Source: Macrostomum lignano (Eukaryota). From it: a stretch of 64,000 nt of DNA. The stretch spans positions 124,001 to 188,000 of the forward strand of contig NIVC01000616.1 of assembly GCA_002269645.1 (NCBI GenBank), read 5' to 3'. The position numbers and the translations under genes were made by a program. This document shows positions 541 through 45,065 of the stretch, piece after piece; the first letter of the stretch is position 1; every line of letters starts with the position of its first letter. A model generated the notes under the pieces. It was given only the letters and a program-made list of their open reading frames with translations, had not been told where the DNA came from and searched no databases.

Positions 541-1951
541 TCCAGAAGCTCCACCTGGGGGAAGGCCAGTGACCATCGAAGTCAGAACTGATGCAGACAC
601 GTGGTCGACGTGCTGATGAAATTTGGAGACTTGGCAAGGCTGCACTGAGGCGCAGTGCTATTTGGCGCACAGGGGTGTACTGAATACACTAGCACTTATG
701 GGAAAAATCCGACCTTCTGGCAGAATCGTCGAATATCTCGACGCTCCGGAGGGCTGGCGACTTGATTCTTGTTTGAGAAGGTGCGCAACAAAAAGTTAGC
801 CCGTGTTCTTGAATTTCGTGTGCCTGCGTTGCTCCGTTCCGGCGCAGCAGAAAATTGTCGGGGGGGGGGATTTTTCGCCCCCTCTTGGTAGTTCGACGGG
901 CGGAAAAATGACTTGGTATTCCTACTGTTAACAACCACGCTGGAAAAGAGATAGGAGAATCATGGATAGAGTTGGATTAAATCTACCACTTGTTGACCAA
1001 CTGGTTTCTGAATGAAAACTTCATCATTTTACCATTTTACCTCTTAGTTCGCACAGTCTTGTTCAAAAGAAACGAGCAGGACTTCAATTCAAGCAATAAG
1101 AAATCTCAGCGCTTGCGGAAATTCAATTCAAACGAAGTCCCTTTTCTATTGAAACAGATGAAATTCGATCTAGAGAAATTAGCCCCTAGAGAGCCTTGAT
1201 GATAGTCTGTCACTGTTGCTTATAATAGTATATTTCCGAGGCTGCTGCCCCACGATCTCTTCCTCGAATTCTGCTTCAACTTCATTGAGTTCATCCTCAG
1301 TCTTCTAGCAATTCGTCTTCAATCTGATCTTCAGCACTCATGTTGATTCTAGCTTCTCTATACCCTCTCCTCTCTACATTCCATTGCCCTCAGGTCATGC
1401 GCTGGGTTGTCTGGCCCTTATGGTAGCAATGTTTTCCGGCCCCTGGTCTAGCGCAATGAAACTGTTTATAGAATTGAGCATGGCAAATGCAATCTAAACT
1501 TGAGTTGCAGTCGGACAGGCAGGATTGTTTTCTTTGGCACGAAGCTTAGAAAAATAAAATGCAACGAAGACAATAGAAAGAGAGACCTGCGTGCGACCTA
1601 AAAAATAAAAAATATTGCAGTAATTTTCTTGACAAGTTCCAGATTCAATGCCATGCATTTTGTGACCCTGGCCCTCGGCCCGAGCCACTTCAGTCTCACC
1701 ATCAGGAGCCTCAAGGCTAGGTAGCATTGAGCAGGCTTGTATGAAAAAGAAAAAGCTCAGATGCTTACGTCTAGATGTCGCAAAATTTGCGCAGTCTCTG
1801 TATGCATTCAATTGCCTAATTGCTATGCCATTCAAGTTGAGAGGCCGGTTATGCATTGACCCACTCCCCGAAATTTAGGTTAAGAGCACGTTTTTTAGGG
1901 CTTTGTTTTGCAAGTAAGCAAAAACGTGCTCCCCGCCCCAGATTGCTTGTC

Positions 1952-1957
1952 TATAAA
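1952..1957 (+). promoter_or_regulatory. TATA box of the Arg-rich prepropeptide gene
   Basis: TATAAA about 90 nt upstream of a GCCATG start at 2044. Confidence 0.6.
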
Positions 1958-2043
1958 TTCGACCGCCTCGAGCTCACAAGAGCCCCAAGACCCAAGACGG
2001 GATCGGCTCTGCAAAGCGAATCTCTCTGAATTCAGCAGCAGCC

Positions 2044-2496
2044 ATGAAGTGGCAGTTCGCCCTCGGTCTCCTCCTGTGCATGGCGCTGGCGGTCTACGCC
2101 AGCCCGGCTGAGCACAAAGAAGAAGACGAAAACCTCGAAAAGGTGTCCTCCTCCGCACTGGCCGATCTGGCCGAGCCCGACCAGGCCGAGCCCGACCTTG
2201 CCGAGTCCGACCTGGCCGAGCCCGACCTGGCCGAGTCCGAGTTGGCCGAGTCCGATGAGAGCACAAATCCGGAAGAAAAGCTCCGAATTAGGTTCGGCAG
2301 GCGGCGCTACTACCGCAGGCGCATCTTCCGCAGGCGCATCTTCCGTAGGCGCTTCTACCGCAGGCGCATCTTCCGCAGACGCATCTTCCGTAGGCGCTTC
2401 TACCGCAGGCGCATCTTCCGCAGGCGCATCTTCCGCAGGCGCATCTTCCGCAGGCGCATCTTCCGCAGGAGGCGCTGCTTCCGCTACCGCGGCTAA
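2044..2496 (+). CDS. Secreted prepropeptide: signal peptide, acidic propiece, Arg-rich (RRRIF)n cationic region
   Basis: Single-exon 150-aa ORF with GCCATG context. Signal-like N-terminus MKWQFALGLLLCMALAVYA; 22 D/E in residues 21-79; 41 Arg in residues 81-150; ends in Gly then stop. Upstream TATA and downstream AATAAA are present. Confidence 0.85.
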   Translation: MKWQFALGLLLCMALAVYASPAEHKEEDENLEKVSSSALADLAEPDQAEPDLAESDLAEPDLAESELAESDESTNPEEKLRIRFGRRRYYRRRIFRRRIFRRRFYRRRIFRRRIFRRRFYRRRIFRRRIFRRRIFRRRIFRRRRCFRYRG

Positions 2497-2593
2497 ATGA
2501 ACCGGATCGTTTTCTGACTGATCGCCTTGGACATTCTGACTAATCTTCTTTGACAAATAATCTTGACTAAAATCAATGACAAAATATCTCAGT

Positions 2594-2599
2594 AATAAA
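2594..2599 (+). terminator. Polyadenylation signal AATAAA
   Basis: AATAAA about 100 nt after the stop at 2496. Confidence 0.55.
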
Positions 2600-2902
2600 T
2601 ATCAGCTATAGTGACTGTTTAATATCCTGGATTTTGAAGTTTCGCCAAGCAAAATACACCCGGCAGTTTGAAAGCACAAGCGAATATTTTTCAATATTAT
2701 AAAAATATTCTCAGCATCTCTCTCCGCTCTTCCCTTTCTGGCCATGCTCAACTATTTGTGTTAGTGCGTTGTTTGAATTCATTAAATGCTAATAGAAACC
2801 ACGCACTCGTACTATAATAAAACATATATAGCTACGCGCATCAGAATGCTAAAAATCATCTTTTGGTTTAGTCTGAAGCTTTGATGTGTGTCTCAATAGC
2901 AA

Positions 2903-3190
2903 GGGGATTGTAGCCCAGTGGTCAGAGCGTCGGTCTCGCCACTTTAAGGTGGGGCTCTATTCCCGATCTAACTGAAACAGTTTGTGTCCTTAAGCAAGAC
3001 ACTTAACTCTGCATTGCTTCAGTTCACCCAGCTGTAAAATGGGTGCTAGCATTAGCTGGGGTAATTGAGGGTGTGTGTGGCGGCCCCCCAGTCCTTGGAC
3101 TGAACAGCCGAACGCAGCCTTGAGATGCGCCGCGCAATAGCTGCGGTTGAGCTGTCGGTTGCACATCTGGCCCGAATGGGGCAGATGCAA
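2903..3190 (+). mobile_element. tRNA-derived SINE with CORE-like central domain (copy 1)
   Basis: tRNA-like head (TAGCCCAGTGG A-box-like), then TGTGTCCTTAAGCAAGACACTTAACTC...CAGCTGTAAAATGGG resembling the MIR/CORE domain. The body is shared with 33856-34116 and 62602-62882. Confidence 0.75.
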
Positions 3191-4569: not shown

Positions 4570-5415
4570 TCAGAGAAGAGAGTAAAGAGAAGAATGAAAA
4601 GAGAAGAGAGATTAGATGATAGAAAACAGAGTAGAAATGAGTGGAGAGATTAGACATGACAGATGGGAGAGAAAAGGGGAGTAAGGCGAGAACGAAGGAG
4701 AGAGAAGAGAAGAGGAGAGAGGAGATGAGATGGGAGATATGAGATAGCAGAGAGAGACAAGAGAGATGATAGGAGAGAGAATAGATGAGGGATAAGAGCG
4801 TACAGAGGAAATAGAAGAGAGGGGAGAGTAGAGGAGAAAGAAAGAGTGAGATGAGGAGATGAGAGATGAGAGAGGAGGGGAGAGAGGAGAGAGAAGAGAG
4901 GAGAAAAGAGGGGAGACAGGAGACAGGAGAGAGTAGAGACAAAAGACCAGGGAGAAGATATAAATAAGGTAGTAGAGATGAGAGGAGAGAGAGGAGAGAG
5001 AAGCGAAAGGAGAAGAGAGAGAGGAGAGAGGAGAGAGATGAAAGATCAGAGATGAGAGAGTTAAGAGAGGAAAGTAGTGAGGAGAGGAGAGGAGAGATGA
5101 GAGATGCGATGAGAAGAGATGAGTGAGAACATAAGAGAGAAGAGATTAGAGATTAGAGAAGAGAGGGGAGAAGATGAAAGGAGCAGGGAGAGGAAAAAAA
5201 GAGAAGTGAGAGAGAGAGGGTTAAGAGAGACGATAGATAAGTGAGTAGAGATGACATATGAGAGAGGAGAGAAGAAGGAGAGATAAGAGAGAAGAGACGG
5301 GACAAGAGACAGGAGAGGGTACAGACGAAAGACGAGGGAGAAGAGATAAATAAGGGAGTAGGGGTAGAGATGAGATAAGAGAGAGGAGAGAGAAGAGAGT
5401 CAAGAGAGAGGAGAA
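4570..5415 (+). repeat. GA-rich low-complexity tract
   Basis: Almost purely purine + strand; produces spurious S/L-rich antisense ORFs. Confidence 0.9.
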
Positions 5416-5575
5416 AAGTTTTGTAAAGGTCTTTGAAAAGTTTTGTAAAGAATTTGGAGACGATTTGGAAGATAGGGTTCAAAACGTGGAATTTCAGTTG
5501 ATGGATATTTCAGGGAATGGAATTCCGGTGATGGGAGTTCTTCCCCTTTCTTCTCCGAAGGAGGAGTTGGCCTCG

Positions 5576-8300
<2,725 letters not shown>

Positions 8301-12928: not shown

Positions 12929-15900
12929 ATGAGCTCTGTTTGGAGAATTTTGCAAACTATTGCAACTTTTCTGATGCAGGCCTTTGAACTATCTGATAAG
13001 GAAGGCTTAGACTCCGAGGTGAGTGATCAAGCTGTCATTGAGGCGGTGACGGCGGACGACGCAGATCTTACCTACAGGTACCTACAGCGCAGGCCAGCAT
13101 TGGTGGGTATATTAGTTCCGATGGACGACAAATTGTTATCCCCACCTCACCTGGCCTGCAGACTGGGCAGGCGAAATGTGCTAGAGATATTCTTGGCAGC
13201 CAAAATTGACATCAACCTGGAAACAAAAACCGGCGAGTCGCTTCTTTACATCGCGTCGCAAAACGGGCACCAACATGTTGTTGATCTACTTATTAAGGCT
13301 CAAGCCGATGTCAACCTTCAAGAGTTCGAAGGATGCACTCCAATCTACATTGCATCACAGAATGGTCACAGTAAAGTTGTTGACCTACTCATCAAAGCTC
13401 ATGCCGATGTCGATCTTCAAGAGACTGTTCATTTCACCTCACCTCTCTACATTGCATCACAGAATGGTCATCTTAAAGTTGTGAACTCACTTATTAAAGC
13501 TCAAGCCGATGTGGATATTCAAGACACTGAAGACTGCTCACCGCTCTATATCGCAGCGCACAACGATCACCCCGAAGTCGTGCACGCACTAGTTGAAGCG
13601 CAAGCCAACGTTGACATTCAGGAAATGGACAAAATGACTCCACTTTACATTGCATCTGAGAATGGTCATCGGAAAGTCGTGGAGTTGCTCATCAACGCAA
13701 AAGCCAACGTCAATCTCCAAGAGATTGAAGGATGCTCACCCCTGTATATCGCGTCACAAAATGGTCATTTTCGAATTGTAGACTGGCTTATTCAAGCGAA
13801 TGCCAATGTCGATGTTTCAAAAGCGGATGGGATGTCACCTATCTTTATTTCATCGCAAAACTGTCATTATAGAATAGTCGAATTGCTCATTAAATCCCAA
13901 GCTGATGTTAATCTTCAAGAGGTTGATGGATGCTCACCTCTCTACATTGCATCGCAGAATGGTCATCGTCAAATTGTTGACCTGCTTATCAAAGCTCAAG
14001 CCGACGTCAATCTTCAAAGGAACACTGGATCTTCGCCTCTCTACATTGCATCGCAAAACAACCATCTCCAAGTTGTTGCCCTGCTTATCAAAGCACAAGC
14101 GAGAGTCAATCTCCAAAGAAGCACGGGCGAGTCACCTCTTTACATTGCATCTCAGAATGGACACATTCAAGTGGTTGATGCCCTTATAAAAGCGCAGGCT
14201 GATGTCAATCTACAAACAAGAAATGGCTCCACATCTCTTCACATATCGTCTCAAGAAGGTCACTTGACGGTAGTGAAGGCGCTCATTAGAGCACAGGCTG
14301 ACGTAAATCGTTCAAAAAACCTCGGAGAGACACCCATCAAAATCGCCTCGGAGGCTGGGCACCTCAATGTGGTAAACATGCTCATAAAAGCGCATGCAGA
14401 CGTCAATGCTTCAGGATATGCTGGCTCTACGCCTCTCGACATTGCCTCTCAGAATGGCCATCAAGAAGTGGTGGCCTCACTGATTAAAGCGCAGGCCAAT
14501 GTAGATCTCCAAAGACACACAGGAGTCACACCACTCTACACAGCCTCACAGAGAGGTCACCCGCAAATAGTGGACATGCTCATTAAAGCAGGAGCTGACG
14601 TTAATCTCCAAGAAAAAGTACAAGGCCCATCACCTCTCTATATTGCGTCACAAAACGGTTGCCAGACGATCGTTGACTCGCTCATCAAAGCACAAGCGGA
14701 CGTGAACCTTCGCGAATTCGATGGGTGCTCCCCTCTCTACATTGCATCACAGAACGGTCATCTGCCTATCGTAGACTCACTCATCAAAGCCCAAGCCGAT
14801 GTCAATCTTCAAAGAAGCGATGGAATGTCGCCTCTCGACATTGCATTCCACACCGGGCGCATTCAAGTCGCGAATTTGCTAGTCAGCGCGTTAGCCGACG
14901 TCCATCTGCGACAATCCAATGGAAAGTGGCAAATAGAAACTGCAACCAACGCGCCAAAGGCTTCAGATTCCATAGACATGCTATTCGACTTAAGCTTGAG
15001 CGAAGAAGAGGACGAAACTGTTCCCAGCCTAGAGACGGATTCTGAGTCTGATTGCTCGTGAGATATTGCAATATTTTCTTTAATAAAAGCTTTTCAACTC
15101 AATTCCTGAAACTTTTGAAACTGTTACGTTTTACTGGGACTTGATAGAATAAAACAGTTTCAAAAATACTTTAGTAGAAATTTTGAATTTTAGGCCCCTA
15201 AATAAAATGAATATGAACACTGATTTACATATTTTAGAACACCTCCAGACGACACAGAGCTAAGCCGGCAACTGTACCTGGCACTCTCTCAGGCAGGATT
15301 CGTAAACTCGAGAGCTGCGCTGCAGAGTGCAGCAGCCGATGTTTTGCAAGAAATCTTAAGAAAGAGGCTTGAGAATGAAGACCAGTTTGTAGTCGGCAGC
15401 TTCTCCGAAGGCTGGGGCAACAGTCTGAAGACACTCGACGGTCGAACTGACATCGCGTCCGATATTGACGTGCTAAGTTTGACTCAGGGCCGCATGTACC
15501 ACCTGAAAGGCATCTGTGAGTGCGCGGAAGAAGAAACATTGCTTCATGAGTACAGTAACGGCCACATTGTGTGTTCCGGCTTCGGTAAGAGTTTCTCTGA
15601 GATTGGTATTTGTTGTGTCTTCTGTTTTTTGTGACAAATCAAAGGAACGAGTCTGGAACTTAAAATGTTAAATTAACCAGCCGATCCTCGGCTTTTGTTT
15701 TTTTTTTATTTCTGCAAGCCTAGCTTGCTCTCGTTACGCGTAGATTGCTAAGGCGTACGGTGCGCTTGGAAGCAAATCATTTTGTTTATGGTTCGGCTTG
15801 GCTTATACCTTATAGCCACAGCAGTATTGTAATACGAGCGTATTATGCCTGTAGTTCCGGTAATCAACTTTTTCGGTATACCTCTTGAATCTAGATAATA

Positions 15901-18791: not shown

Positions 18792-21700
18792 TTAAGAGGC
18801 CAAGTCGTCTGCAGGCCCGTCGTCGTTGTTCACCGTGCTGCGCGTGTCGTTGACAGTCGCATCCTTGGCTGACTTGGCCTTGCTGCACCGAAATGGGCCC
18901 ATGTAGCTCGACCTTGGCAATTAGAAAGTGGGCAAAATCAATCAACCAATGGCATGTCTACATATAAAAACGAAAACTCTGTCTCGCCCAGGTCGGCACC
19001 ATATAGTAATCTTACTAATTTTCATAATAATAGTAGCGTTAAAGTGGGTAATCTTACTAAGATTCTTACTAAGATTCGTAGTAGGATAAGGCGAAATTAG
19101 TACTTCTTACTACGACTTTGTTAGCTAATCTTGGTAATCTTATCAGGTGATCTTGGTAATCTTATTAGGTGCACAGTAGCAGAATTAGGGGGGGGGGGCG
19201 TCCCTAGGCGCCAAAAACATCGCCACAATGTTGATGCAATGTTGTCCGTAAATGTCATAATGTTGCTTTTGTTGTGGCAAATGAAGCACTGTTGACATGT
19301 CAACTTTCGCACGGAATGCTACTAATAGTACTAGTATATATACCTGAAAATGTGTATTTTCCATATAAAAAAGAAAAAATCAAACTCGACGGGGGGCGCG
19401 CGCCCTGTGCGCCCCCCCTCTAAGGCTCTAAATCCGCTACTGGTCATTGCAACAAGTGTGAAACCATAATAATCTTTAGTGTTTTCTTGAATACTAGCTT
19501 ACTAAGAAGATGACAAAACTTCTTTGTAAAAGTAGTAAGTTACTTATTAATATTCTACTAATAATACCAAGAAGATGATCTTAGTAATCATAATATGAAT
19601 CTTAGCAAGAAACTACAAAGATAACTACGAATTGTGTAATCTTAGTAAGATTAAACAACCTAAGACTTATCTTGCGAAGATAACTATATGGTGCCCGACC
19701 TGGGTGCGTACAAATTTGTTCGCTATGGATTCCCAAACCACTCAGTCAAATAAATACAAAGTATCAAATGAGATGAATTTGCACCTTCAACTCTTCTATA
19801 ACTAGTTTTACGACGTATAACTAAACTAAACTTCATTCGAAGTCCTAATCCTACTTAAATTTGACACAATCTGCAACTTTTTGACACAATTCTGTAAATT
19901 TTCTAGTCTCGATATTGGTCTTGTCTGAACGGTGCTATTCACTTTTAAATTTACTCTGTTTTCTTCTGCGAGACAACCACTTAACCTCCAGCTGTCTTCC
20001 TCGGTTTTGACTCTTAAAAAAAATGTCTCAACTCTGTAACTCAATAGGACGGAAACTGTAAGCATGTGAAGTTCATCTGCTTTTGCTTTGATTTTCGATT
20101 TGCTTCAAAATACTTCAATTTTTTACCTCCCATCTCTATCTTGAATGTTATTAGGCTTTTGTTTGAGTATGAATTTCAATGTCAGAATGCAGAATGCAAA
20201 AATAGTTCCGGGGATTGGGATTCAGCAGGTTTCAAGAGCTTGTATCTGCATATATGTATAGTTCGGAGAAGCATTTAAATCGTTTTGCCTCAGTGTAGCA
20301 ATGTATGTACGAGCTATGTAATGTATGCATTTGTGTGTAGGTATGTATGATTGTATACGTGTGTGCCTGTGAGTACGAGCTTATTTAGGAATTTGTGTGC
20401 ATGTATTGCATGTACATGTATGTACGAGCTATATATGTAGTACGGATGTGTGTGCATGAATTTATGCATGTCTTAATTTGCCTACTTTTGTCTATAGGCT
20501 GCGGCTGCATGCAGCAGATGGCAGATTTTCATATTGGATGCCTAGTCATTCAGGGACTCAGTTCGGTGCCATGAAATCTTTCTTAAGGACTCCGCTCACT
20601 AATAAATCTTACCTGTCGTCGTCAATCTCTGCACCGGCTCCCGCTGCGTCGCCTCCTTCCCCGTTTGGCGAGTCGGGGACCGATGGCTGTGACGGCAAGC
20701 TCTGCTCCGCAGTGCTCAACTCCATTTCGATGTCCCGTAGGATTAACTCGGTCTCAATGGCCGGTTCGCTGAAATTGGCGCAGGCTTAGTGTAGAACCCT
20801 AACCGCAACGCGTTACAATGTTACAATGAACCCTATTTCAACTTTGTGCATCTGTTCGGACTCTGATTTTTATGAAGTAACAGCTAGTGAAATTCACAGG
20901 CCATGAAATTCAGGGTTTCTGACCAGTATCCTGCTATTATGACGTTTTATAGCAGACTTGCTCTGGCGCTTCAGTAGCTTACATGTACATATCTGCATCT
21001 GCTACGACTGCTCGCTGCTTCTCATTACTCACCCGCCGCTGTCCTCGGGCAACTGGAGGCCTCTTCTCTGCATCTCCAGTCTCACATCGGAACTGGCCCA
21101 GGATGACAGCTGTGCCAGCAGCCTCCTGCTGCTGTCGTCCCCCAGTCCCGCGTTCTCAGCGATCAGAGTCGCGCAGACCAGGCAGTCGCGATAGACCGCC
21201 ACCATCAGCGGAGTGACACCGTTGGAGTCCGTCACATCGAGACTGGCTCCGTGCTGCTGGAGAAGCTGGAGGATGTCGGACCTGCCTGCCAAAACCGCGA
21301 GATGCGCCGGCGTCCGACCCTGTCCGTTGGCTTTTTTCGGATCAGCTCGTCCGTCGCTTAGCAGGAACTCGACAACGTCTTTGAAGCCCCGACGGCAGGC
21401 GTACATGAGCGCCGTGTTTCCCTGCTGATCCGCGTGGTCGAGCGGCAAGCCCTGTTCGCATGCAAACTTCACAATGTTCAGGTGACCTTCCTGATCGGCG
21501 CTAATGCAGGCCAAGTGCACAATGTCTCTGCCCTTCTCGCTCCTGTGGCCAATGTTGCAGTCGTAGCCCTGGAGCAGCTTCAAGGACTTCAGATGGCCCC
21601 TGCTGGCGCTCTCGAGAACCGGAGTGTTCCCGTCACGATCCGCCAAGTCCAAGGGAGCATTATTCTCTCTGAGAAATCTGAGCACATGGGCATGCTTAGA

Positions 21701-24700
21701 AGTGGCGGCAATTTGAGCCAAACTCCTCTGATGACCATCGCGATGCTCTTTCCAGTCGGTCATTTCAGAGGTCACTTTTTGGATCAAATGAAGGTTGCCG
21801 GATGCCACAGCCCAGCTAATGGTGCCCTTGGCAGTCGGCTCGTCATCGGCTATTAGCTGTGCACCTCGCTTGACCAGCCAGTCTGCGATGTGCTGGTGAC
21901 CGCGTTGCACAGCCAGGTGGATGATGCAGTCGGGCAGCGCGGGATCTTCGGCGTTCTGGTGCAGAAAATTGGCGACCTCCTCGTGCCCGTTGAGCACTGC
22001 GAGCTGAAAGGGCGTCAGTCCTTGGGCATTCAGCTTCCTAAAACAGTCGGGACAGGTCTCATGAATGCGCTTGAGAATGTTTAAGTTTCCATGCATTGCG
22101 GCATAGTGAGCGCTGTTGCATTTATTGCTGCAGGTCGCAGCTTCTTTGAAGCCTTTTAGTAGCAGAAGTTTAAACACTGAGAGGTTGCCAATGGCTGCGG
22201 CAAGTTGCAGGGGCGACAGTGTGCCAGAAGGCTCAGCGGCATCTGGTTGAGCAGCTATCTGGCAGTGATCGAACAGCCACTGAACCAAGCTCAACTTGCT
22301 TTTCATCACTGCCACGTGCAGTGGTGTGCGGCCTTCAGAGTTTCTGATGTCCGTGCGGCAGTTCATGGCGAACAGCTCGGCGGCCATGTCCAGTCTTCCT
22401 GTCATGAGTGCACAGTGGAACGCCGTGTTCCCCTGAGCATCCTGTTTGTCTACAATGTCAGCGAGGAAGGCGCATCTCGAGTTCCTTCTTAGAGACCGCA
22501 ACAGTCGAATGTTCCAAGTTCGAACTGCGTGGTGGAGAATAGTTGCTCCCTCGTTGTCAATTTTTTCATCTAAATGTAAGCCTTTATTCAAAAGAAAGTC
22601 CAGGTGCTTGATGTCCATGTGCTTGAAAATTTGCTCCATCTTGAGCACACTGGCTACGTGCCTCATGCTCAATTGAGCTTCCCTTGCAGCCAGAATATCC
22701 ATGATCTTCACCGAGTTCAGTGCCGCCGCCAATGAGTAAACTGACAGCCCGAGCTTGTTCTCGGCGAGTGCGTCCGCCCCTCGATCAAGCAGAAGCGCGG
22801 CCGCCTTCTCGTTTCCGAATCGAATCGCGCTGAAAAGTGGCGTTTCACCTTCATTGTCTTTAAGGTCAATAATTTCTGACAGACCCTTAGAAAGTAGTAA
22901 TCGAATGATCTCCTTGCTTCCACCGGCAGCCGCAAAGTGATGCGCGCTTTTGCCATCTTTATTGGTTGCTTTTACATCCAGTCCGGGTGCTTCAATCAAG
23001 TCTTTCAGGGCTTTAATTGCGGCGTCTCTTGTGACGAATCCCTGTTGCAGATCAGATTTTACGCTGGAATCCGGGACGTCATTCCCGTACATTTCGAGTG
23101 GGGGCATCAGTTTTTGCTGGTTATTTGAATGCTCCCTGGACTCAGGGTTTTGCAGCTTGGATGTGCATTTCTTGCCGCAAAGTATGAGAAGGGCATTGTT
23201 GCCCTCCAGATTGACTTCCGATGCCCTGGCTCCAGCCTCAAGTAACAGGGGAATCAGTCTTACGTGGCCATTTTTCACAGCAACAATCAGGGCGTTGTCG
23301 CCCAGCGAATTCTTGTAGTTCAGGTGCACTCCTTGCTCAAGCAGAAACTTCACTATGCCTTCGTTCCCATTGGCGCACGCGATAGTGAGGCAGTTTTCAC
23401 GTGATTTTGTTCGACTTCTTAGGGAAACTCGGACATTGGCGCTTTGCGTTTTCTTGAGAATTTCCAGACTTCCGGATTGACACGCCAGGTGAGCAACGGT
23501 GCGATCTTCGTGGTCCACTGTTTCATCGATTCTGCCATGGTTGCTCTGAAGGATATTCAGGATGGATTCGCAGCCAAGCACAACGCTTAGCATGACAGGC
23601 GAAGTTCCAGAGTCATCCAGTGCATTTGGATCGCCAACCCCCTGATCGAAAAGAAAGCGAATGGCCGCCTCGTTCTTGCCCTGGACGGCATAGTGGAGAA
23701 CAGTTTTCAGTGCATAGTCGGTGACAGAAAATGAGCACTTAATATTGTGCAGAAACATCAGGAACTCGCGGTCTTGCTTTTCAGCCGCCAACATAACTGG
23801 AACAACGCCGTTCCAATCCGGCTGATTAAGTTTGGCGGCATTGTCGTGAAGAAGCTTTATCAGGTTCAAAGATCCTGACTGACAGGCGAAGTAAGCCGGC
23901 GTCTTGCCATCGTGATCAACTGCATTCACGTCGGCACCTTTCTTAATCAGGAACCTGGCCATGTCAAACTTGTTGCTCGAGCAGGCCAGCATAAGTGGCG
24001 TGACGCCAGCGCTGTCCTCCTGGTCCATGACGCAGTCGAACAGGGACAGGCACTGGACGATTTTACGGCTGTCCGGTCAGAAACTCCAAAATAGCCAATG
24101 AATTTTTCGTGGCCTTCAGCGCCTCTAGAAGAAGAGAATTTCCGTCGTGGTCCACCGTCTGCAGATCGGCTCCTTTTTCATGCAAGTACTTGACGATGTC
24201 AAGCTCCCCTTTGGAAACAGCGTAATTCATAGCAGTTTTCCCGAATCTGTCCTTGTGGTCAACCATGCACATTTTCGACTGGCCTGTCAGGAGTTTTATA
24301 GCATCGAACGCACCATTCTGAACGGCAATGATCAGTGGCGTCATGCCGTTAATATCCGGCTCGTCGAGGCAAACTTTTCGTTGTAGGAGAAACTGCAGCA
24401 GCGCCACGTTGTTTTCTCTGACAGCGTAGAAGGCCACAGTGTGCCCGTGGCTGTCTTTCCTGTCAAGTCGGAATTTTTTGTCTGCTAAAAACCGAACCAT
24501 CGACAGCGATTTGTTCCGCGCGGCGCAAAGGATGGCCGTCTCTCCCAGCCGATCAGGGGTGTCCAGATTAGCGCCCCGCTCTCCGAGCAGCATCAGTATT
24601 TCTTCCTGCTTGCTGGCAGCCGCTCTCAGCGCCGGCGTTACGCCGCGAATATTTTGGACATTCATATTGCATTTCTGGTCAATTAGAAACTCCAGGGCTT

Positions 24701-25832
24701 GAATTGGACCTTTCTGGCTGACTGCCAATAAAGGCGTCTCCTCGGTCCTAAGACCTGGTCTGTCAAGTTCAACGGCCTTGTCCGCGAGAAACTTCAGAAA
24801 CTCGAGCACATCGTTTTGCCTGAATGATGCCGCCATCAAGCTGAGCTCTCCCATCTTTCCATGCCCTTCCAGTGAACATTTTTGCTCGACTAGATACTTC
24901 AGCATCTCAATTGGGCCATGAGCAACTGCCAGCTGAGCAGGGGTGAAATTTTGCTCCGCTCGGTCGAAAATCGGAGCCTCCTTCTCTCGGAGAAGCTCTA
25001 AGATTTCGAAATTCCCGGCTTGAATGGCCACCTTGATGCACTCTGTGTTTTGCTTCACATCGCATCCGTTGTCAAGCATGTACTTCACGGCATCGTAAAA
25101 ACCGCTCCGGATTGCGCAGCAAAGTGGGCTGTCTTCATCAGACGGAACTTTGCCATTGAAATTCACGTTAAAGTACTGCAGCATCTGCGTGTGGCCGCAG
25201 CGGGCCGCTTTGGATGCCAAGCTCAGTTTGGTAGCGTAGGATCCGTCACAACTTCTCTCTATCATAAAGCAGACCACATGGATCCAGTTTTTCTTCACAG
25301 CTTTTTCAAGAATGCCGGCTATGGGCTGTTCATCAAGCTGGTGGATGCACGATTGCTTGTCTTCTAACTTTTTAGCAATTTCAGTGTGGCCAAAGTACAG
25401 CGCGTAATACACAGCCGTCAGACCCTCGCTAGTCTTCTTTTTCACGTCAATTTCTTTGCCGAGAAGCTGGTCCACGATGATTTCACTGCCTACTTGAGCG
25501 GCACACATCAGGGGAGTCAGACCCGCCTTGTCGCATTTGTCCAGATCTGCGCCCTTGTTGATCAGAGTGCCGACCAAGTCGTTGTGGCCGGCCAGGGCTG
25601 CCAGGTGCACTCCAGACTGGCCATCGTCATCTGTGCAGTTGACATCGATGCCTTTCTGCAGAGCTTTGTTCACTGAGTGCCAGTCTCCTGATAGGATTGC
25701 TGCAAAGAAGCTGCTCTTCTCCGCCTCTGCTTTCCGCTCAGCTTCCCGGCCGGTACTTGGCAGACACTGCTTGGCCGGCAGCAGAAACTTCTCTAGCATT
25801 TGGCGCAATTTTTTTCTTATTGTCTTATTGAC
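18792..25832 (-). CDS. Very large ankyrin-repeat protein (about 1700 aa if repaired) with one internal frameshift; 5' end unresolved
   Basis: ANK ORFs 24063-25808 and 21029-24028 lie in frames offset by one base with no room for an intron. Inferred 3' exons: donor GG|GTGAGT at 21032; exon 20768-20613 (TTTCAG acceptor, AG|GTAAG donor, EPAIETELILRDIE..DDDR); last exon 18912-18792 (SSYMGPFRCSK..LAS*). All are phase-compatible. Possible acceptor ACAG before 25832. Confidence 0.65.
18987..19704. mobile_element. MITE-like element with about 21-bp terminal inverted repeats
   Basis: CCCAGGTCGGCACCATATAGT (18987-19007) and ACTATATGGTGCCCGACCTGGG (19683-19704). AT-rich interior with TAATCTTACTAAG repeats in both orientations. 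No clear TSD. Confidence 0.7.
19174..19442. mobile_element. Inner MITE-like element with CAGTAGC termini
   Basis: CAGTAGCAGAATT at 19174 and AAATCCGCTACTG ending at 19442; subterminal G and C runs are complementary. No TSD seen. Confidence 0.55.
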
Positions 25833-25885
25833 CTGTCGTTGTAACCAGAGTTGGGAGCTTTTAATAAATGTACCGATTTTTCAGT

Positions 25886-26575
25886 GTTCTCTCATGACCG
25901 CTTTAATTTCTCTCATGACCGCTTTAATTTCTCTCATGACCGCTTTAATTTCTCTCATGACCGTTTGATTTCTCTCATGACCGCATCAATCTATTTCATA
26001 ACCGCATCAATCTCTCTCATGACAGCATCAATCTCTCTCAGAACCGCATCAATCTATTTCATAACCGCATCAATCTCTCTAATGACAGCATCAATCTCTC
26101 TCAGAACCGCATCAATCTCTCTAATGGCTGCTGCATCAATCTCTCTCATGACAGCATCAATCTCTCTCATGACAGCATCAATCTCTCTCATGACAGCATC
26201 AATCTCTCTCATGACAGCATCAATCTCTCTCAGAACCGCATCAATCTCTCTCATGACAGCATCAATCTCTCTCATGACAGCATCAATCTCTCTCAGAACC
26301 GCATCAATCTCTCTCATGACAGCATCAATCTCTCTCAGAACCGCATCAATCTCTCTCATGACAGCATCAATCTCTCTCATGACAGCATCAATCTCTTTCA
26401 TGACAGCATCAATCTCTCTCATGACAGCATCAATCTCTCTCAGAACCGCATCAATCTCTCTCATGACAGCATCAATCTCTCTCAGAACCGCATCAATCTC
26501 TCTCATGACAGCATCAATCTCTCTCATGACAGCATCAATCTCTCTCATAGACGCATCAGTCTCTCTCAGCACCAC
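25886..26575 (-). repeat. 21-bp minisatellite (about 32 units) encoding heptad (MREIDAV)n on the minus strand
   Basis: Unit GCATCAATCTCTCTCATGACA. ORF 26054-26605; two units carry GAG>TAG and one unit is 20 bp. Confidence 0.9.
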
Positions 26576-27543
26576 ATCAAGCTCTCGATTTTGTAGCTCA
26601 TTCAAACTCTCATCACAAGCATTTCCCTTTCTATATACCTTACAGGCTAGATAGAGTACAGTAAATCTTATCTACTTAAAAATGAATAACTGTACTAATA
26701 GGCAAAATGAACTGTAGTTCTTACCAAGCTTGATGAATAGAATTAGCCACTAGCAACTCATTGTACAGCCTTTATACCCTCACTAGAGTCTCGCAAAATT
26801 GATAGTCAAATCAGATAAACCGGCTTAAAACTTTCTAAATAGATTAAAAAGGCGTTGTCAAAAACACCAGGGTTTTATCCGCTGTGGAAAAAAGAGTTAC
26901 GAAGTTCCACTTTGTAGGCAGTTGGCAATGTACGCAGCAATGTACGGCCGCGGGTGTAAATGTTCATAAGGGACAAGGGACAAACTGGAGCTGTAAATGC
27001 TTCTATTTATAGCTCCGCACGTTCTGCTTTTTGAGGCGCTCATTTAGCGAATAAAAAGTTGCAGTTGAAATTACGATAGTAAAATGTATAGCTCTGCTTG
27101 TGTACGTTCAGCTTGCAATGTGCATTCCAATGTTTACACTTAACTTACTAGTTCATCTTTCTGTACTTGCCAGTTCATCATTATAATTTGCGTTTAACCC
27201 ATTTCCTGAAAATCTAACACTTTAACAGGAATCACTACAACTACTCGCACTTCGGTAATCAGTCGAATCTTAGCTTATGACTCTGAATCAGCCGCGGAAG
27301 AAAATAAAATGACAAGTAGGACAGGACCGAAAACTAGAACGCGACACCTTGCAGGCGTGATTTATTAAGTGTTATTAGTATTGTTTTGTGCAAGTAAAAT
27401 CATGAAAAGTACATCTCAGCACTGCTTGCGTGTCAACACTAACCCATTTCGAACGACAGCAACGAATGAAATTCTGTACGTTTTATACCCATCAAAGAAA
27501 ACTAGCTGGTTTTCCTTCAGTTCTCACCGTTATGCTCGGCGGT

Positions 27544-30370
27544 TCAGGGCTTCCGACAGGCCTGGATTTTGGCGATCGCCCTGCCAATGCCAGGCGAGAG
27601 CCACACGTTGAGCAGCCTCTGACGGAACTCGCGCTCCGGCATGCCGGTCCTGATTCGCCTTCGCCGTAATAAAAACGTTTCGACGCCCCACGTAGTCAGG
27701 GCCACAATCCCGAAAACGATGAGAAAAATGAGGGTCACTGTGGCCCCGACCAGCGCTGCGTTATTCAATGTTCGCAGCACCTTTACCACAATTTCCCCGA
27801 TTCCGTTAGGCAGCATGACGAGCTGCGATCCTCGCGTCATCAGCTGAAGTGAGGCTCGTCTGCCATAAATCAGGAAGTTTACAAAGTGCTCAGTTGTTGT
27901 TGAACAGATCGTAGCTCTCAAAACCTTGGAACTCTCTGAATCTTGAATCGATCTTCTCCCAGTCCGGCTCACAGTTGTGCACAACCTTCTCAATGCTGTT
28001 GGCTGTTGCAATTCTAAGAAATCCGCGGAACTCCTTGAACCCTTTGTCCTCGCGCTCAGCTCCGAACTCGTACGTCACGCCTTGTCTGCTACACTGAGCT
28101 GAATCCCAGTCGGTGATCACAAAGTGGACATCTTTCTCAACTCCATGCACTCGGCGCTTCAGCACGATGTGATCCCACCGTCTCAGGTCCGACTTCGTCA
28201 CTCCGTCTTCGAACTGCAGACTCTCGCAGCTATCTTTGATTTTTGTTAATTCGGTCCCGAACAGACTCTGCACGCCACGTAGTCCTTCGCAAGACCAGAC
28301 CATCTTCAGCCCGAAGCAGAAGTCCTTGTCAGTGACCTTGCTGCCTCCTTTGCCAACTGAGCCTTTGAAGTCATCGTCCGAGTTAAGAAATGTGCAATCC
28401 TGAATCTCATCCAGACGAGACGCACTCGGCTCGACATCCAAGCTGGGGTGCTGCACTCTGCGGATGATATCTGTGCTGCTAAAGTCCAGAGGCTCCATCC
28501 GCACTTTCCGGTATGGAGCATTGTTCTCGTAGATCCGAACTCGCACGATGTCCGAACAGCCCGAGACCTTTTGAATGTCTCTCAGAATGGCATCGTGCGT
28601 GTAAAATCTCGCAAACTTTTGATACTTGATGTGACATTTACCGAACTCCAGCAGCTGAGCGGCTGACTCGATAGGCACACAACACTGCTCCCTGTTGCTG
28701 GCGTGCCTGATGCTGCACCAACGAGCAAAGTCTCTCGAGCTGTTCCACTGTAGATCAAACTGCCGTTCACCGATCCGCGACTTTGCTCTGGCAACCACTT
28801 GGTCAGGAGAAAAGTGAATTTCAGCAGGCACTTTGTAATCGACTTCAAAGAGTTCATCTTCTACTTTAAAGCTTACACTCCTTTCAATGATTTCGTGCGA
28901 GTTCTCGCACGGGTTTACTCTGAATTCAGTGTACTCATACATTGCTAAGTCTAATTCATACTCGCCAGTAGCCTCTGAAATAACTTTTGGATTTTCTAGA
29001 ATGGCTGCTCTGGTGTACATCCCGCTGTCTTTCTCTTTCTTGAAGCTGACTATGCTGCCTCTCTTAAGGCAGCTTGGCTTTTTCACCCTAGTGCGGGTAT
29101 CAATTGGTCGTTTTGAACCGCCTCCGTAGAGAGAACAGTTCTCTTTGACGTCATTGTGAACTACAAGTTGTGCTTCAGATTCCCTGTTACCAATGACGTA
29201 CTTGATCTCCCGGTGTTCACTGACATTCTCAGCGTCATCAATGCTGTACTGCAGAGTTTCCAGTTTAATCTGCTGAGAGGAGGAGCCCAGCTGCACTCTG
29301 AGAACAGCGCGATGTGTTTTTCCTGAGCAGATTATGTCACCAGGACGAAGGTCTCTCGCTTTTACCTGCTCAATTCGGTTGCTAGTTGGTGACGCTCTTC
29401 CATTGAGCAGACTCTGCAACCAATACGTCTCATCTTCTGATTGCGAGCATGAGACCACAATCTGCGCAACGTCTTTGCTCGATTTTGGGGACCTGAACGC
29501 CAGGTCTTTAATCACGTTTGCCTTCTCAGCGAGTCTTGCCTGATAGGTTTGAGGCAGTTGGGATCTTCTGGTCTTCAGAGCTGTGTCAGCTTTGAGTTCT
29601 TCGCCCGACTTGTTAATGCTTTGGAATTTCGAATTTTTCCAGTCTTCCTCTGCGACAAGAACTGTGAGCAAGTGCCCGGTGTCATCCAGGTCCGTGACTT
29701 TCTTCACCTCTCCGTGAATCGTGCTCCAGCCGAATTTCAAATTCATGTGGTCATTCTCCTTCACCTGGTGAATCGGATGCTGATCAGACAGGTAGATCGG
29801 AACTAGAACTGTATCCAGATGAGTAGAGTTGATCGTCTTGCACCATCTCGCGAACTGTCCCGAGTTACTCGCCATTCTGCCATAGTTCCGGTCGTTCAGT
29901 CGGCTCTCGGCTCTCTGAAGCACCACCTCGGGTGGGTAGCAGCAGCTCTTGGAGAACAGCAGGAGTCTGCAGTAGCGACGGCCTGACAGCAGAAATTCCT
30001 CTCTCACGACAGTCTTCACCGCTCTGTGCCACCCGTAGTGAAACGCAGTGGCAACAGTCTTGTCGGCTGTTGTTGTGACTCGTTCGATCAGGATTGTGCG
30101 GGGCATGCCGTTATACCTGATCTCCAGCACGTCCGCAGGCTTCAGTTGGTGTAGGTTGTACTCTGTGATGCTCACCCAGCCTCGCTTTATGGCTTCATCA
30201 TCTACCACAACATCGGCGTCGGTAGCCAAAGAAATAAACTCATTTTCGTTCAAAAAACCGTGGTTGCACAGCAGCGACTCGAGGTCGGTTCCGAGGTTGT
30301 GCAGAACAGGTAGGACATCGCTAGCATCGAAGGCTGCGCTAGTGTGAGAGGCTGGCAGTTTGTGCTGCAT
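27544..30370 (-). pseudogene. Multi-LRAT (permuted NlpC/P60) protein, copy 1, frameshifted at the catalytic Cys (about 942 aa if repaired)
   Basis: ORF 27890-30370 ends DLFNNN*; the tail EHFVNFLIYGRR..hydrophobic segment..CRKP continues in the frame of ORF 27544-28011. Relative to copy 2 (AAC TGT GAG CAC) it reads AAC TGA GCA C, a 2-nt deletion. May be an assembly error. Confidence 0.75.
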
Positions 30371-33855: not shown

Positions 33856-34116
33856 GGGTTGCAGCCTAGTCGTCAGAGTTGGCGGACTCACGACTTGAAG
33901 GTCGGGGGTTCGATTCCCGATTCGACTCGGAACAGTTTGTGTTTTTGAGCAAGACACTTAACTCTGCATTGCTTCAGTTCCCCCCGTGGAAAAATGGGTA
34001 CCAACATTAGCTGGGGGAATTGAGGGTGTGGCGACCCCCCCCCCCCAGTCCTTGGACTGAACAGCCGTATGCAGCCTTCAGATGCTGTCGGTTGCGCATA
34101 TTTGGGCGGGTGTACT
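33856..34116 (+). mobile_element. CORE-like tRNA-SINE (copy 2)
   Basis: B-box-like GGTTCGATTCCC; AGCAAGACACTTAACTCTGCATTGCTTCAG and CCCAGTCCTTGGACTGAACAGCCG shared with copy 1. Confidence 0.75.
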
Positions 34117-34265: not shown

Positions 34266-37100
34266 TCAGGGATTTCGGCAAGCTTTAAGATAGGCTATCG
34301 CCATTCCGGGCACTGGCGTGAGCCAAGCGTTCAGGATTCGCTGTCGAAATTCATTAACTGGCATGCCAGTTCTGATCCGCCTCCGGTGCAGTAAAACTGT
34401 TTCCACTCCGCTGGATATAACGGCCACAACAGAAGCTACCCAACTCACAACGAAAGTAACCCTTCCAAGCTTTGAGCCCGCAGCAAGGACCCTAGAAAAT
34501 ACTTCCACGAATTCTATTACCCGAGATGATATCGAGCTGATTCCACTGGGTATTCTCACGAGGATTGTGCCTCTCGACATCAGCTGAAGAGAAGTGCGTC
34601 TGCCATAAATCAGGAAGTTTACAAAGTGCTCACAGTTGTTGTTGAACAGATCGTAGCTCTCAACACCTTGGAACTCTCTGAATCTTGCATCGATCTTCTC
34701 CCAGTCCGGCTCACAGTTGTGAACAACCTTCTCAATGCTGTTGGCTGTTGCAATTCTAAGAAATCCGTTGAACTCCTTGAACCCTTTGTCCTCGCGCTCA
34801 GCTCCGAACTCGTACGTCACGCCTTGTCTGCTACACTGAGCTGGATCCCAGTCGGTGATCACAAAGTGGACATCTTTCTCAACTCCATGCACTCGGCGCT
34901 TCAACACGATGTGATCCCACCGTCTCAGGTCCGACTTCGTCACTCCGTCTTCGAACTGCAGACTCTCGCAGCTATCTTTGATTTTTGTTAATTCGGTCCC
35001 GAACAGACTCTGCACGCCACGTAGTCCTTCGCGAGACCAGACCGTCCTCAGCCAGAAGCAGAAGTCCTTGTCAGTGACCTTGCTGCCTCCTTTGCCAACT
35101 GAGCCTTTGAAGTCATCGTCCGAGTTAAGAAACGTGCAGTCCTGAATCTCATCCAGACGAGACGCACTCGGCTCGACATCCAAGCTGGGGTGCTGCACTC
35201 TGCGGATGATATCTGTGCTGCTAAAGTCCAGAGGCTCCATCCGCACTTTCCGGTATGGAGCATTGTTCTCGTAGATCCGAACTCGCACGATGTCCGAACA
35301 GCCGTCTGTCCTATGCGACTCCATCAATAAGACGTCATGAGTGTACACACCAAGCGACTTTGTGAACTTGATGTGACCTTTACCGAAATCCAGCAGCTGA
35401 GCGGCTGACTCGATAGGCACACAACACTGCTCCCTGTTGCTGGCGTGCCTGATGCTGCACCAACGAGCAAAGTCTTTCGAGCTGTTCCACTGTAGATCAA
35501 ACTGCCGTTCACCGATCCGCGACTTCGCCCTCGAAACCACTTGGTCAGGAGGAAAGTGACGTTCAGCAGGCACCTTGTAACTGACTTCAAAGAGTTCATC
35601 TTCTACTTTAAAGCTTACACTCCTTCGAACGATTTCGTGCGAGGTTTTCCACGGGTTTACTCTGAATTCAGTGTACTCATACATTGCTAAGTCTAATTCA
35701 TACTCGCCAGTAGCCTCTGAAATAACTTTCGGATTTTCTAGAACGACTGCTCTGGTGTACATCCCGCTGTCTTTCTTTTTCTTGAAGCTGACTATGCTGC
35801 CTCTCTTAAGGCAGCTTGGCTTTTTCACCCTAGTATAGATATCAAATGGTCGTTTTGAACCGCCTCCGTAGAGAGAACAGTTCTCTTTGACGTCATTGTG
35901 AACTACAAGTTTGGCTTCAGATTCCCTGTTACCAATGATGTACTTGATCTCCCGGTGTTCACTGACATTCTCAGCGTCATCAATGCTGTACTGCAGAGTT
36001 TCCAGTTTAATCTGCTGAGAAGAGGAGCCCAGCTGCACTCTGAGAACAGCGCGATGTGTTTTTCCTGAGCAGATTATGTCACCAGGACGAAGGTCTCTCG
36101 CTTTTACCTGCTCAATTCGGTTGCTATTTGGTGATGCTCTTCCATTGAGCAGACTCTGCAACCAATACGTCTCATCTTCTGATTGCGAGCATGAGACCAC
36201 AATCTGCGCAACGTCTTTGCTCGACTTTGGTGACCTGAACGCCAGGTCTTTAATCACGTTTGCCTTCTCAGCGAGTCTTGCCTGATAGGTTTGAGGCAGT
36301 TGGGATCTTCTGCTCTTCAGAACTGTGTCAGCATTGAATTCTTCGCCCGACTTGTTAATGCTTTGGACTTTAGACTTTTTCCAGTCGTCCTCTGCGACAA
36401 GAACTGTGAGCAAGTTCCCGGTGTCATCTAGGTCCTTGACTTCTTTCACCTCTCCGTGAATCGTGCTCCAGCCGAATTTCAAATTCATGTGGTCATTCTC
36501 CTTCACCTGGTGAATCGGATGCTGATCAGACAGGTAGATCGGAACTAGAACTGTATCCAGATGAGTAGAGTCGATCGTCTTACACCATCTCGCGAACTGT
36601 CCCGAGTTGCTCTGCATTCTGTCATAGTTCCGGTCGTTCAGTCGGCTCTCGGCTCTCTGAAGCACCACCTCGGATGGGTAGCAGCAGCTCTTGGAGAACA
36701 GCAGGAGTCTGCAGTAGCGACGGCCTGACAGCAGAAATTCCTCTCTCACGACAGTCTTCACCGCTCTGTGCCACCCGTAGTGAAACGCAGTGGCAACAGT
36801 CTTGTCGGCTGTTGTTGTGACTCTTTCGATCAGGATTGTGTGGGGCATGCCGTTATACCTGATCTCCAGCACATCCGCAGGCTTCAGTTGGTGCATATTG
36901 TCGTCATCTAGCCTTACCCAGCCTCGAATTTTATCTTCATCATTTAGTTCAATTTCGGTGTCGGTGCCAGCGCCAGCTGTTCTGTTCGAGTCGCTCTGGG
37001 GTAACAATTGGATTTCGCGCTCGTCCATGACCAGATCGTCCAGCGGCTCCTCGATGTAGGCGTCTTCGCCACCCCGTAGAGCTGCCAGTTCTTGTTCCAT
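34266..37100 (-). CDS. Multi-LRAT (permuted NlpC/P60) protein, copy 2, intact, about 944 aa
   Basis: Open frame. About six LRAT-like modules (L.P.D...H...RA.SRL....Y....N[S/C]..FARWC). The last has DVHFVI...YDLFNNNCEHF (Cys codon 34632-34634), followed by a hydrophobic C-terminal segment. Likely start is MEQEL at 37100, just after a CAG acceptor. Confidence 0.85.
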   Translation of the reverse strand: MEQELAALRGGEDAYIEEPLDDLVMDEREIQLLPQSDSNRTAGAGTDTEIELNDEDKIRGWVRLDDDNMHQLKPADVLEIRYNGMPHTILIERVTTTADKTVATAFHYGWHRAVKTVVREEFLLSGRRYCRLLLFSKSCCYPSEVVLQRAESRLNDRNYDRMQSNSGQFARWCKTIDSTHLDTVLVPIYLSDQHPIHQVKENDHMNLKFGWSTIHGEVKEVKDLDDTGNLLTVLVAEDDWKKSKVQSINKSGEEFNADTVLKSRRSQLPQTYQARLAEKANVIKDLAFRSPKSSKDVAQIVVSCSQSEDETYWLQSLLNGRASPNSNRIEQVKARDLRPGDIICSGKTHRAVLRVQLGSSSQQIKLETLQYSIDDAENVSEHREIKYIIGNRESEAKLVVHNDVKENCSLYGGGSKRPFDIYTRVKKPSCLKRGSIVSFKKKKDSGMYTRAVVLENPKVISEATGEYELDLAMYEYTEFRVNPWKTSHEIVRRSVSFKVEDELFEVSYKVPAERHFPPDQVVSRAKSRIGERQFDLQWNSSKDFARWCSIRHASNREQCCVPIESAAQLLDFGKGHIKFTKSLGVYTHDVLLMESHRTDGCSDIVRVRIYENNAPYRKVRMEPLDFSSTDIIRRVQHPSLDVEPSASRLDEIQDCTFLNSDDDFKGSVGKGGSKVTDKDFCFWLRTVWSREGLRGVQSLFGTELTKIKDSCESLQFEDGVTKSDLRRWDHIVLKRRVHGVEKDVHFVITDWDPAQCSRQGVTYEFGAEREDKGFKEFNGFLRIATANSIEKVVHNCEPDWEKIDARFREFQGVESYDLFNNNCEHFVNFLIYGRRTSLQLMSRGTILVRIPSGISSISSRVIEFVEVFSRVLAAGSKLGRVTFVVSWVASVVAVISSGVETVLLHRRRIRTGMPVNEFRQRILNAWLTPVPGMAIAYLKACRNP

Positions 37101-38385: not shown

Positions 38386-38402
38386 CGCCCCCGGGTGGGC
38401 TC

Positions 38403-38439
<37 letters not shown>

Positions 38440-41255: not shown

Positions 41256-41553
<298 letters not shown>

Positions 41554-45062: not shown

Positions 45063-45065
45063 AAA

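Follow-up and report, generated by a model that had tools for sequence, protein, structure and literature searches.

We analysed a 64,000-nucleotide stretch of the Macrostomum contig NIVC01000616.1, hereafter the window, which carries at positions 2044-2496 of its forward strand an open reading frame (ORF) of 150 amino acids. An earlier note, made from the letters of the DNA, had read this ORF as a secreted peptide with matched acidic and arginine-rich pentamer arrays, and the sequence check returned the same coordinates. The ORF is preceded by a core promoter (1860-1957, +), composed of the motif block CACGTTTT...AAACGTG... and a TATAAA box (1952-1957) located 92 nt 5' of the ATG, and by the transcription start region and 5' untranslated region (5'UTR; 1958-2043, +; …CTCTGCAAAGCGAATCTCTCTGA…CAGCAGCAGCC). 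Translation would start in the context gcagccATGa, and an AATAAA polyadenylation signal (2594-2599, +) is located 98 nt 3' of the stop; the TATA, start-context and poly(A) signals listed in the earlier note are thus all in place. We read 2044-2496 as a real gene of a Macrostomum-type flatworm, with a single exon and a TATA-driven promoter, which is probably functional and would encode a secreted prepropeptide. No further copy of the gene was detected within the 64-kb window by tblastn and ORF scan. On the opposite strand, an ORF of 174 aa (2032-2556, -) reads (AEDAP)n plus (GLGQV)n, and was rejected as a second gene, its repeats being an artefact of reading the two in-frame arrays on the other strand. 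RNA structure was dismissed as an explanation as well, since shuffled sequences fold better than the mRNA does (z = +2.1).

The predicted precursor is composed of three parts. The signal peptide occupies residues 1-20 (MKWQFALGLLLCMALAVYA|S, with V at -3 and A at -1; codons 2044-2103, +, MKWQFALGLLLCMALAVYAS), its cleavage being judged by the -3/-1 rule only. The acidic segment, residues 21-78, contains 22 Asp or Glu among 58 residues (net -20) and, together with K79 of the conserved junction P-E-E-K79, forms the pro-piece (aa 21-79; 2104-2280, +). Within this pro-piece, a 15-nt tandem array (2162-2255, +) encodes six to seven AE[PS][DE]L pentamers in register, three of them with Pro and the others with Ser at the same position. 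The basic segment, residues 79-150, contains 41 Arg, 12 Phe, 9 Ile, 5 Tyr, 1 Cys and a terminal Gly among its 72 residues, and its own 15-nt tandem array (2299-2469, +) encodes 11 units of RRR plus two residues, in a 45-nt higher-order unit FY-IF-IF, followed by RRRRC-FRYRG-stop. Both arrays were delimited with Tandem Repeats Finder and a repeat-family search, together with an in-register listing for the acidic and a codon listing for the basic array. The predicted mature peptide, L80-R149 (2281-2490, +), is 70 aa in length with 41 Arg, 26 Ile/Phe/Tyr and 1 Cys (about 10.29 kDa if amidated), being 59% Arg and 37% aromatic or aliphatic with a charge of about +42; it is followed by the codon of Gly150, a putative amidation donor, and the TAA stop (2491-2496, +).

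The inventory of the earlier note (signal peptide, 22 acidic residues, Arg-rich array with 41 Arg, one Cys and terminal Gly) was found complete, and Tandem Repeats Finder returned the 15-nt period that it had claimed for both halves, with 6.3 copies and 87% matches for the acidic array and 10.5 copies and 90% matches, rising to 95% at the 45-nt period, for the basic array. A 45-nt super-period was detected in both. The formula (RRRIF)x11 of the earlier note is correct in the number of pentamers but not in their sequence, as only 8 are RRRIF and the rest are 2 RRRFY and 1 RRRYY, and the arrays are matched in period but not in copy number or charge (-20 vs +42). Pattern searches for the arrays returned 10 and 5 matches, every one of them within the ORF, where shuffled sequence would give 0, and neither repeat was detected elsewhere in the 64 kb by pattern searches and tblastn. 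The idea that the acidic array was copied from the basic one by inversion or frame shift was rejected because the repeat-family search found no inverted repeats; the two arrays are unrelated at the DNA level.

A search of 5.8 billion proteins with the window protein gave one match, P0001. This hypothetical protein of Macrostomum lignano has the acidic skeleton of the window protein and almost the same signal peptide, and ends with a Gly after a tail rich in Arg, Tyr and His. A second M. lignano protein, P0002, which is encoded at three loci and ends …YFRLG, came from an exhaustive HMMER scan of 1.84 billion representatives, and a profile of the prepro region alone retrieved P0001 and P0002 and nothing else. 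In M. lignano the family is covered by the unnamed and uncharacterised gene models BOX15_Mlig025063g1, Mlig027113g1 and Mlig019489g1. The family signal peptide reads MKWQFALGLLLC[MV]ALAVYA[SN]PAE (family profile E-values 1e-31); the signal peptide of the window gene differs at 1-2 residues from those of P0001 and P0002, and its first 23 residues are identical at 22/23 positions to P0001 and at 21/23 to P0002. Alignments gave, for all three proteins, the acidic skeleton ALAD[LM]AEP…ELAESD with the end P-E-[EL]-K; each has an Arg/aromatic-rich tail with Gly-stop (…CFRYRG* in the window protein, …VAYHG* in P0001, …YFRLG* in P0002). The intact paralogs and the window gene are single-exon genes with a common core promoter (CACGTTTT…AAACGTG…GTCTATAAAT) and 5'UTR, the promoter block being kept at the M. 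lignano loci L001:10001 and L002:10001. The 5'UTR is about 80% identical to that of the P0002 gene (L002), and far better conserved than the coding part past the signal peptide. By these common features P0001 and P0002 are judged to be true paralogs of the window gene. The earlier note had proposed to look for paralogs by BLAST and for variation in repeat number; the latter was also found, the acidic array being of 2 units in P0001 and P0002 and of 4 units in a broken M. lignano copy.

This broken copy belongs to a cluster on L001, the P0001 locus, which holds two or three members in addition. The true ORF of P0001, at L001:10001-10318, is uninterrupted and encodes 105 aa, whereas the deposited model BOX15_Mlig025063g1 has 96 aa and omits 27 nt (9 aa, RRRFYRRYY) inside the repeat; the omitted segment is too short to be an intron and is probably a difference in repeat number between the transcript used and the genomic copy. 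Another gene, L001:719-1165, is located 9 kb 5' of the P0001 gene and encodes 148 aa, composed of a signal peptide of another sequence (MKLQLLCLSLLVLGLAVFCVAAEE), an acidic piece of -15 and an 80-aa (RRRYY)n-type tail of +43 with a terminal Gly. Its product gave no BLASTP alignment with the window protein, and it is probably only a distant paralog of the window gene, as suggested by its location in the same cluster, the same architecture and the common CTGGCGGTCT in the signal-peptide DNA. The broken copy itself (L001:13743-13922) is located further downstream in the cluster, at the position equivalent to the window gene, in a region with 73-84% identity to window 1481-3173; it has lost the signal peptide together with the ATG and the promoter, and comes to a premature stop (FRIRFRFRKHRYFRRRSQF*). 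The remnant of another family member is a lone ATGAAGTGGCAGTTCGCCCTGG start at L001:12108-12130, preceded by promoter-like sequence. As far as these sequences tell, the family is small, clustered, genus-restricted and fast-evolving, and is gaining and losing copies.

The GenBank annotation of M. lignano rests on a transcriptome assembly guided by the genome, from which novel transcripts with less than 0.5 reads per kilobase per million (RPKM) were dropped (PMC5730564). Since the paralog models are thus transcript-derived, they speak indirectly for transcription of the family. The window peptide itself was absent, as an exact protein, from the assemblies and transcript-derived sets in the exact look-up. 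Together with the 90-100% identity of the repeat units, the broken state of the M. lignano copy at the equivalent position and the abundance of other minisatellites in the window, this absence is in line with a decaying or neutral locus, in which a family member that has lost its function or its expression would have undergone a runaway minisatellite expansion, its frame being still open only as the expansion is recent and went in 15-nt in-frame steps. We consider such a locus improbable: the gene retains in intact form, and in common with the expressed paralogs, its promoter, TATA box, 5'UTR, ATG, signal peptide, junction, Gly-stop and poly(A) signal, two different arrays are both in frame, and an independent family member, the L001:719 gene, has an (RRRYY)n array of similar length with a charge of +43.

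The divergence between the paralogs is highly uneven along the precursor. For the 20 codons of the signal peptide, the synonymous divergence (dS) is 0.07-0.15 and the nonsynonymous divergence (dN) 0.02-0.05, while dS rises to 0.65-0.98 for the pro-piece; in the basic part the divergence is saturated, and an alignment is hardly possible. The same pattern, a signal sequence frozen even at synonymous sites and a divergent rest, is characteristic of the conotoxin and frog-skin peptide families. Bipartite charge, clusters of paralogs and genus restriction are, in addition, hallmarks of the antimicrobial peptide families of Hydra (PMC10945409). By analogy, the conserved prepro region with a hypervariable product, the clustering, the pseudogenisation and the genus restriction observed here would represent the pattern of taxon-restricted secreted effector peptides. 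Comparison of the window protein, its paralogs and its analogs with Pfam-A, NCBIfam and PDB gave sub-threshold noise only, and literature searches with RRRIF, RRRYYRRR, Macrostomum arginine-rich or antimicrobial peptides and the gene IDs retrieved nothing on the family.

The exhaustive HMMER search also recovered unrelated proteins with the same layout of signal, acidic part and (RRR-aromatic)n. Of eukaryote type are P0013 (L005:2759-3148, GCA_011087705.1), which is encoded on a eukaryotic contig with hAT and Tc5 transposases and carries (RRRYV)n with the end …RRRRFG; P0050, with (RRRLF)n and the end …RRRFG; P0042, with (RRRYY)n and the end …RRRYYGKK; and P0022, a protein of the jellyfish Sanderia malayensis with (RRRW/V-X)n. 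All four have strongly acidic spacers and unrelated signal peptides, and three end with G or GKK. More than a dozen bacterial analogs of about 100-150 aa were found in metagenomes (P0004, P0008, P0014, P0016, P0019, P0020, P0030, P0031, P0037, P0039, P0040, P0044, P0046 and P0049), in which a twin-arginine or Sec signal and an Ala/Pro/Asp/Glu spacer are followed by a C-terminal (RRRYW)n or (RRRFY)n; neither a terminal Gly nor a curated family was found among them. A cyanobacterial protein (Chlorogloeopsis) has the layout as well. One bacterial analog, L006:2637-2960, is located between a FemAB-like gene and a HIT-family gene and near an EipB-like gene, a context that looks alphaproteobacterial. 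The recurrence of the layout suggests that secreted polycations of RRR-aromatic pentamers evolved convergently, a class that to our knowledge was not described before. That signal, acidic spacer and (RRR plus two aromatic or hydrophobic residues)n make up a recurrent, independently evolved class, in eukaryotes with an amidation Gly at the end, and with the shared job of capturing or condensing extracellular polyanions is a doubtful proposal, which we offer tentatively.

The C-terminal Gly of the window protein had been proposed as the donor of an amide, and the comparison fits this proposal. Gly-stop is present in 4/4 intact Macrostomum genes, of which the basic parts are otherwise unalignable, and three unrelated eukaryote-type analogs (the eukaryote-type set includes two proteins from metagenomes, classed by sequence features) end with G or GKK as against 0/16 bacterial-type analogs. 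Because Gly was kept although the basic parts are unrelated and only 3% of their residues are Gly, the terminal residue is likely to be a functional amidation donor. The same observation bears on the alternative of the earlier note that the gene encodes a neuropeptide precursor, in which cuts at K79 and G85-RRR would free LRIRFamide and the Arg repeat would be spacer or waste. The segment K-LRIRF-G-RRR is a textbook motif of amidation and dibasic cleavage, formally perfect in the window gene, and the tail of P0002 (RR-YLRSYFRL-G) also seems processable; moreover, flatworm FMRFamide-like peptides end with -IRFamide, and GYIRFamide-immunoreactive neurons are present in M. lignano (PMC2717932). 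However, the motif occurs as a single copy in the window gene and is absent from every paralog (P0001, P0002, the L001:719 gene and the broken copy), the corresponding sequences being EEK-LFFRRRRRR in P0001, EK-FRIRFRFRK in the broken copy and LK-WFSRWFRITY in P0002. The conserved feature is instead the terminal Gly of the whole basic part, and the family is genus-restricted, unlike neuropeptide genes. A neuropeptide precursor is therefore quite improbable.

In outline, the secreted prepropeptide of the earlier note, with an anionic pro-piece and a cationic C-terminal product, is borne out, at the level of sequence, by the layout kept in the paralogs. The charges of the two parts are, in contrast, far from equal. 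The pro-piece of -20 faces a product of +42 with a sum of +22, and among seven precursors a pro-piece of -15 to -24 is combined with a product of +9 to +43 without proportionality (family sums -7 to +28); the balance of charge expected of host-defence prepropeptides is thus not observed. Structure prediction from the single sequence by AlphaFold2 (AF2; pLDDT 64, pTM 0.24) gave one long low-confidence helix for the basic array, a coil, also of low confidence, for the acidic array, and no hairpin. Partial neutralisation by the pro-piece is plausible, but the matched, same-period charge zipper of the earlier note finds no support in the unequal charges, in the lack of proportionality within the family or in the arrays, which are unrelated in DNA sequence. 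As a speculation, an extended acidic array of about 6 units could span a helical basic array of 12 units in a zipper of 1:2 register.

The hydrophobic moment of the basic array is as low as 0.06 at 100 degrees (alpha) and 0.09 at 170 degrees (beta), compared with 0.45-0.56 for magainin 2 and LL-37, and the one maximum, at 72 degrees, is trivial. The product thus shows no amphipathic secondary structure, and the antimicrobial reading, if taken to mean a classical amphipathic peptide, finds no support. Without an amphipathic face the array is better described as a secreted protamine-like polycation than as a pore-forming helix.

This chemistry would also suit a structural or material polycation, for instance a component of secretory granules, mucus or rhabdites, adhesive glands, the eggshell or seminal fluid. 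Such a component would serve to condense a cargo of polyanions or to make coacervates by Arg-aromatic (cation-pi) contacts, the acidic pro-piece blocking early condensation. The charge of +42, the 37% of aromatic and aliphatic residues and the absence of an amphipathic moment favour condensation or coacervation over membrane lysis, and reproduction-related genes of Macrostomum are reported to evolve rapidly. Amidation and the pattern of a conserved signal with a hypervariable product are, however, to be expected of a bioactive peptide more than of a matrix protein. Macrostomum adhesion relies on highly positive Lys/Arg-rich repeat regions, but the known adhesive proteins are giant multidomain proteins and not 10-kDa peptides (PMC8621496). 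We regard a structural, coacervate or reproductive-secretion role as the main rival of the defence reading, possible if on the unlikely side. Condensation of nucleic acids inside the cell, by a protamine-like sperm nuclear basic protein, is very improbable: the 59% Arg with Tyr and Phe and one Cys resembles the composition of protamines, but the signal peptide, acidic pro-piece and amidation Gly of all members point to the secretory pathway, and in place of a nuclear protein without secretory signal we find a conserved signal peptide and pro-piece.

We return to the secreted effector. In the mechanism that we infer for its secretion, cleavage site, amidation, intact product and function, the signal peptide would route the precursor into the endoplasmic reticulum (ER), and the Pro-punctuated acidic pro-piece, by analogy with known precursors, would partly neutralise and shield the polycation in transport and storage. 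A cut after P-E-E-K79, a junction conserved in the family, would free the 70-residue peptide, and the conserved Gly150 would be turned into a C-terminal amide. The product, RRR plus two hydrophobic residues in repeated pentamers (59% Arg, about +42), would act outside the cell as a protamine-like poly-Arg/aromatic polycation, and would bind and condense the polyanions of its targets, be they microbial envelopes, nucleic acids or sulfated glycans. Its most likely role, by analogy with the Hydra arminins and frog-skin peptides, would be host or surface defence. The combination of signal peptide, anionic pro-region, cationic product and processing site that characterises such precursors is present in the window gene (-20/+42, conserved junction).

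Several observations weigh against this proposal. With its 25 overlapping dibasic positions and one R-X-[KR]-R site, the peptide would be shredded in a cell with prohormone convertases, and whether it survives intact would be decided by the set of convertases in the cell that makes it. The pro-piece offsets less than half of the charge of the product. The repeat units are nearly identical, so that the expansion of the arrays is recent and could be neutral, and the positional counterpart of the gene in M. lignano is a pseudogene. Furthermore, the gene IDs of the paralogs are absent from the literature and from the supplements, possibly incomplete, of M. lignano expression papers. Weighing both sides, we give a probability of about 0.5 to the joint proposal of a taxon-restricted, arminin-like or frog-skin-like prepropeptide that releases a protamine-like secreted polycation, a live gene and a role in defence included.

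If made as predicted, the peptide would be a natural, genetically encoded counterpart of the synthetic poly-Arg/aromatic cell-penetrating and cationic arginine-rich peptides (CARPs), and an extreme polycation with a built-in acidic inhibitor or chaperone. It would then offer a tractable system for the safe making, storage and release of a polycation, as RNA interference (RNAi) and transgenesis exist in M. lignano, where some 1-2 kb of sequence 5' of the start sufficed for the genes studied in PMC5730564, and a possible template for an antimicrobial or polyanion-condensing reagent. With the jellyfish, other eukaryote-type and bacterial analogs it would represent a testable case of convergence among low-complexity secreted effectors that were overlooked by homology-based annotation.

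The rest of the window carries a number of other features. A dispersed repeat at 2838-3173, 33858-34085 and 62685-62864 and, outside the window, at L001:16383-16734 has a head that resembles a tRNA (GGGGATTGTAGCCCAGTGGTCAGAGCG…) and is probably a tRNA-derived short interspersed nuclear element (SINE) common to the window and M. lignano L001. Large intron-less ankyrin-repeat ORFs are clustered at 12929-15061 (+, 710 aa), 21029-24028 (-, 999 aa) and 24063-25808 (-, 581 aa). Two paralogous intron-less ORFs with an LRAT/NlpC-P60-type domain are located at 27890-30370 (-, 826 aa) and 34266-37202 (-, 978 aa), the former seemingly truncated at the C terminus relative to the latter. A tRNA-Asn(GTT) gene (38386-38459, -) adjoins an intron-less ORF for a cys-loop ligand-gated ion channel (39664-41052, -, 462 aa; best database match 46% identical). 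In the phospholipase-D ORF with HKD motif at 59053-59727 (+), the segment SIDWRSLTQVRHSP is repeated about seven times directly after the active-site motif, an in-frame minisatellite expansion within the catalytic domain that possibly marks a pseudogene. A look-up of the exact proteins of three long ORFs neighbouring the gene found none on record. The load of micro- and minisatellites is very high (4570-7960, 25850-26650, 41188-41589, 45000-49600 and 51500-55300), and includes GA/AGAGA tracts, a 30-nt 'MTASISL' array, a long ACN (poly-Thr) tract and several kb of 24-30-nt arrays; the long ORFs in these satellite regions, where the arrays are open in several frames, are artefacts.

Among known systems, the flatworm FMRFamide-like precursors (GYIRFamide, YIRFamide, RYIRFamide) resemble the window gene in that K-LRIRF-G-RRR would give an -IRFamide peptide (PMC2717932), but have no counterpart to the bulk of its Arg repeat. 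Closer in the chemistry of the product are the protamines and synthetic CARPs such as R12F8 (FFRRRRFF…) and R12Y8, designs of which (FFRRRRFFRRRR…, YYRRRRYY…) are listed in PMC7052017: all are more than 55% Arg with aromatic pairs, and the CARP pattern is almost that of the window array. Protamines, in contrast, are nuclear and without signal peptide or pro-piece, and CARPs are man-made, whereas the window peptide is natural, secreted by prediction, genetically encoded and about three times longer. The tachyplesins and polyphemusins of horseshoe crabs are Arg/aromatic-rich, C-terminally amidated defence peptides with the tail …CYRRCR-NH2, to which the tail …RRRRCFRYR-NH2 predicted for the window peptide is similar; they are, however, beta-hairpins of 17-18 aa with two disulfides and a C-terminal acidic pro-piece, while the window protein has one non-conserved Cys and an N-terminal pro-piece.

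The precursors of frog-skin peptides (dermaseptin/temporin-type) and conotoxins are composed of a signal, an acidic spacer, a basic cleavage site and a hypervariable product, often with a Gly donor. Their signals are conserved even at synonymous sites while the rest is divergent, as in the window family. Their products are short amphipathic helices or Cys-knots, as opposed to the array with a moment of 0.06, and their junction is KR in place of the monobasic P-E-E-K of the window family, with which they have no homology. The same layout as in the window gene is found in the arminin precursor, with a signal peptide, an anionic N-terminal part, a strongly cationic C-terminal part and an amidation signal. 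Arminins have no sequence similarity to the window protein, their active part is of about 31 aa and about +12 as against a 70-aa pentamer array of +42, and their activity is demonstrated, whereas a defence role of the window peptide is predicted by analogy. The likeness to the arminins and related antimicrobial families of Hydra nevertheless extends to the organisation of the genes, which are in both cases clustered paralogs of one genus with bipartite charge (PMC10945409).

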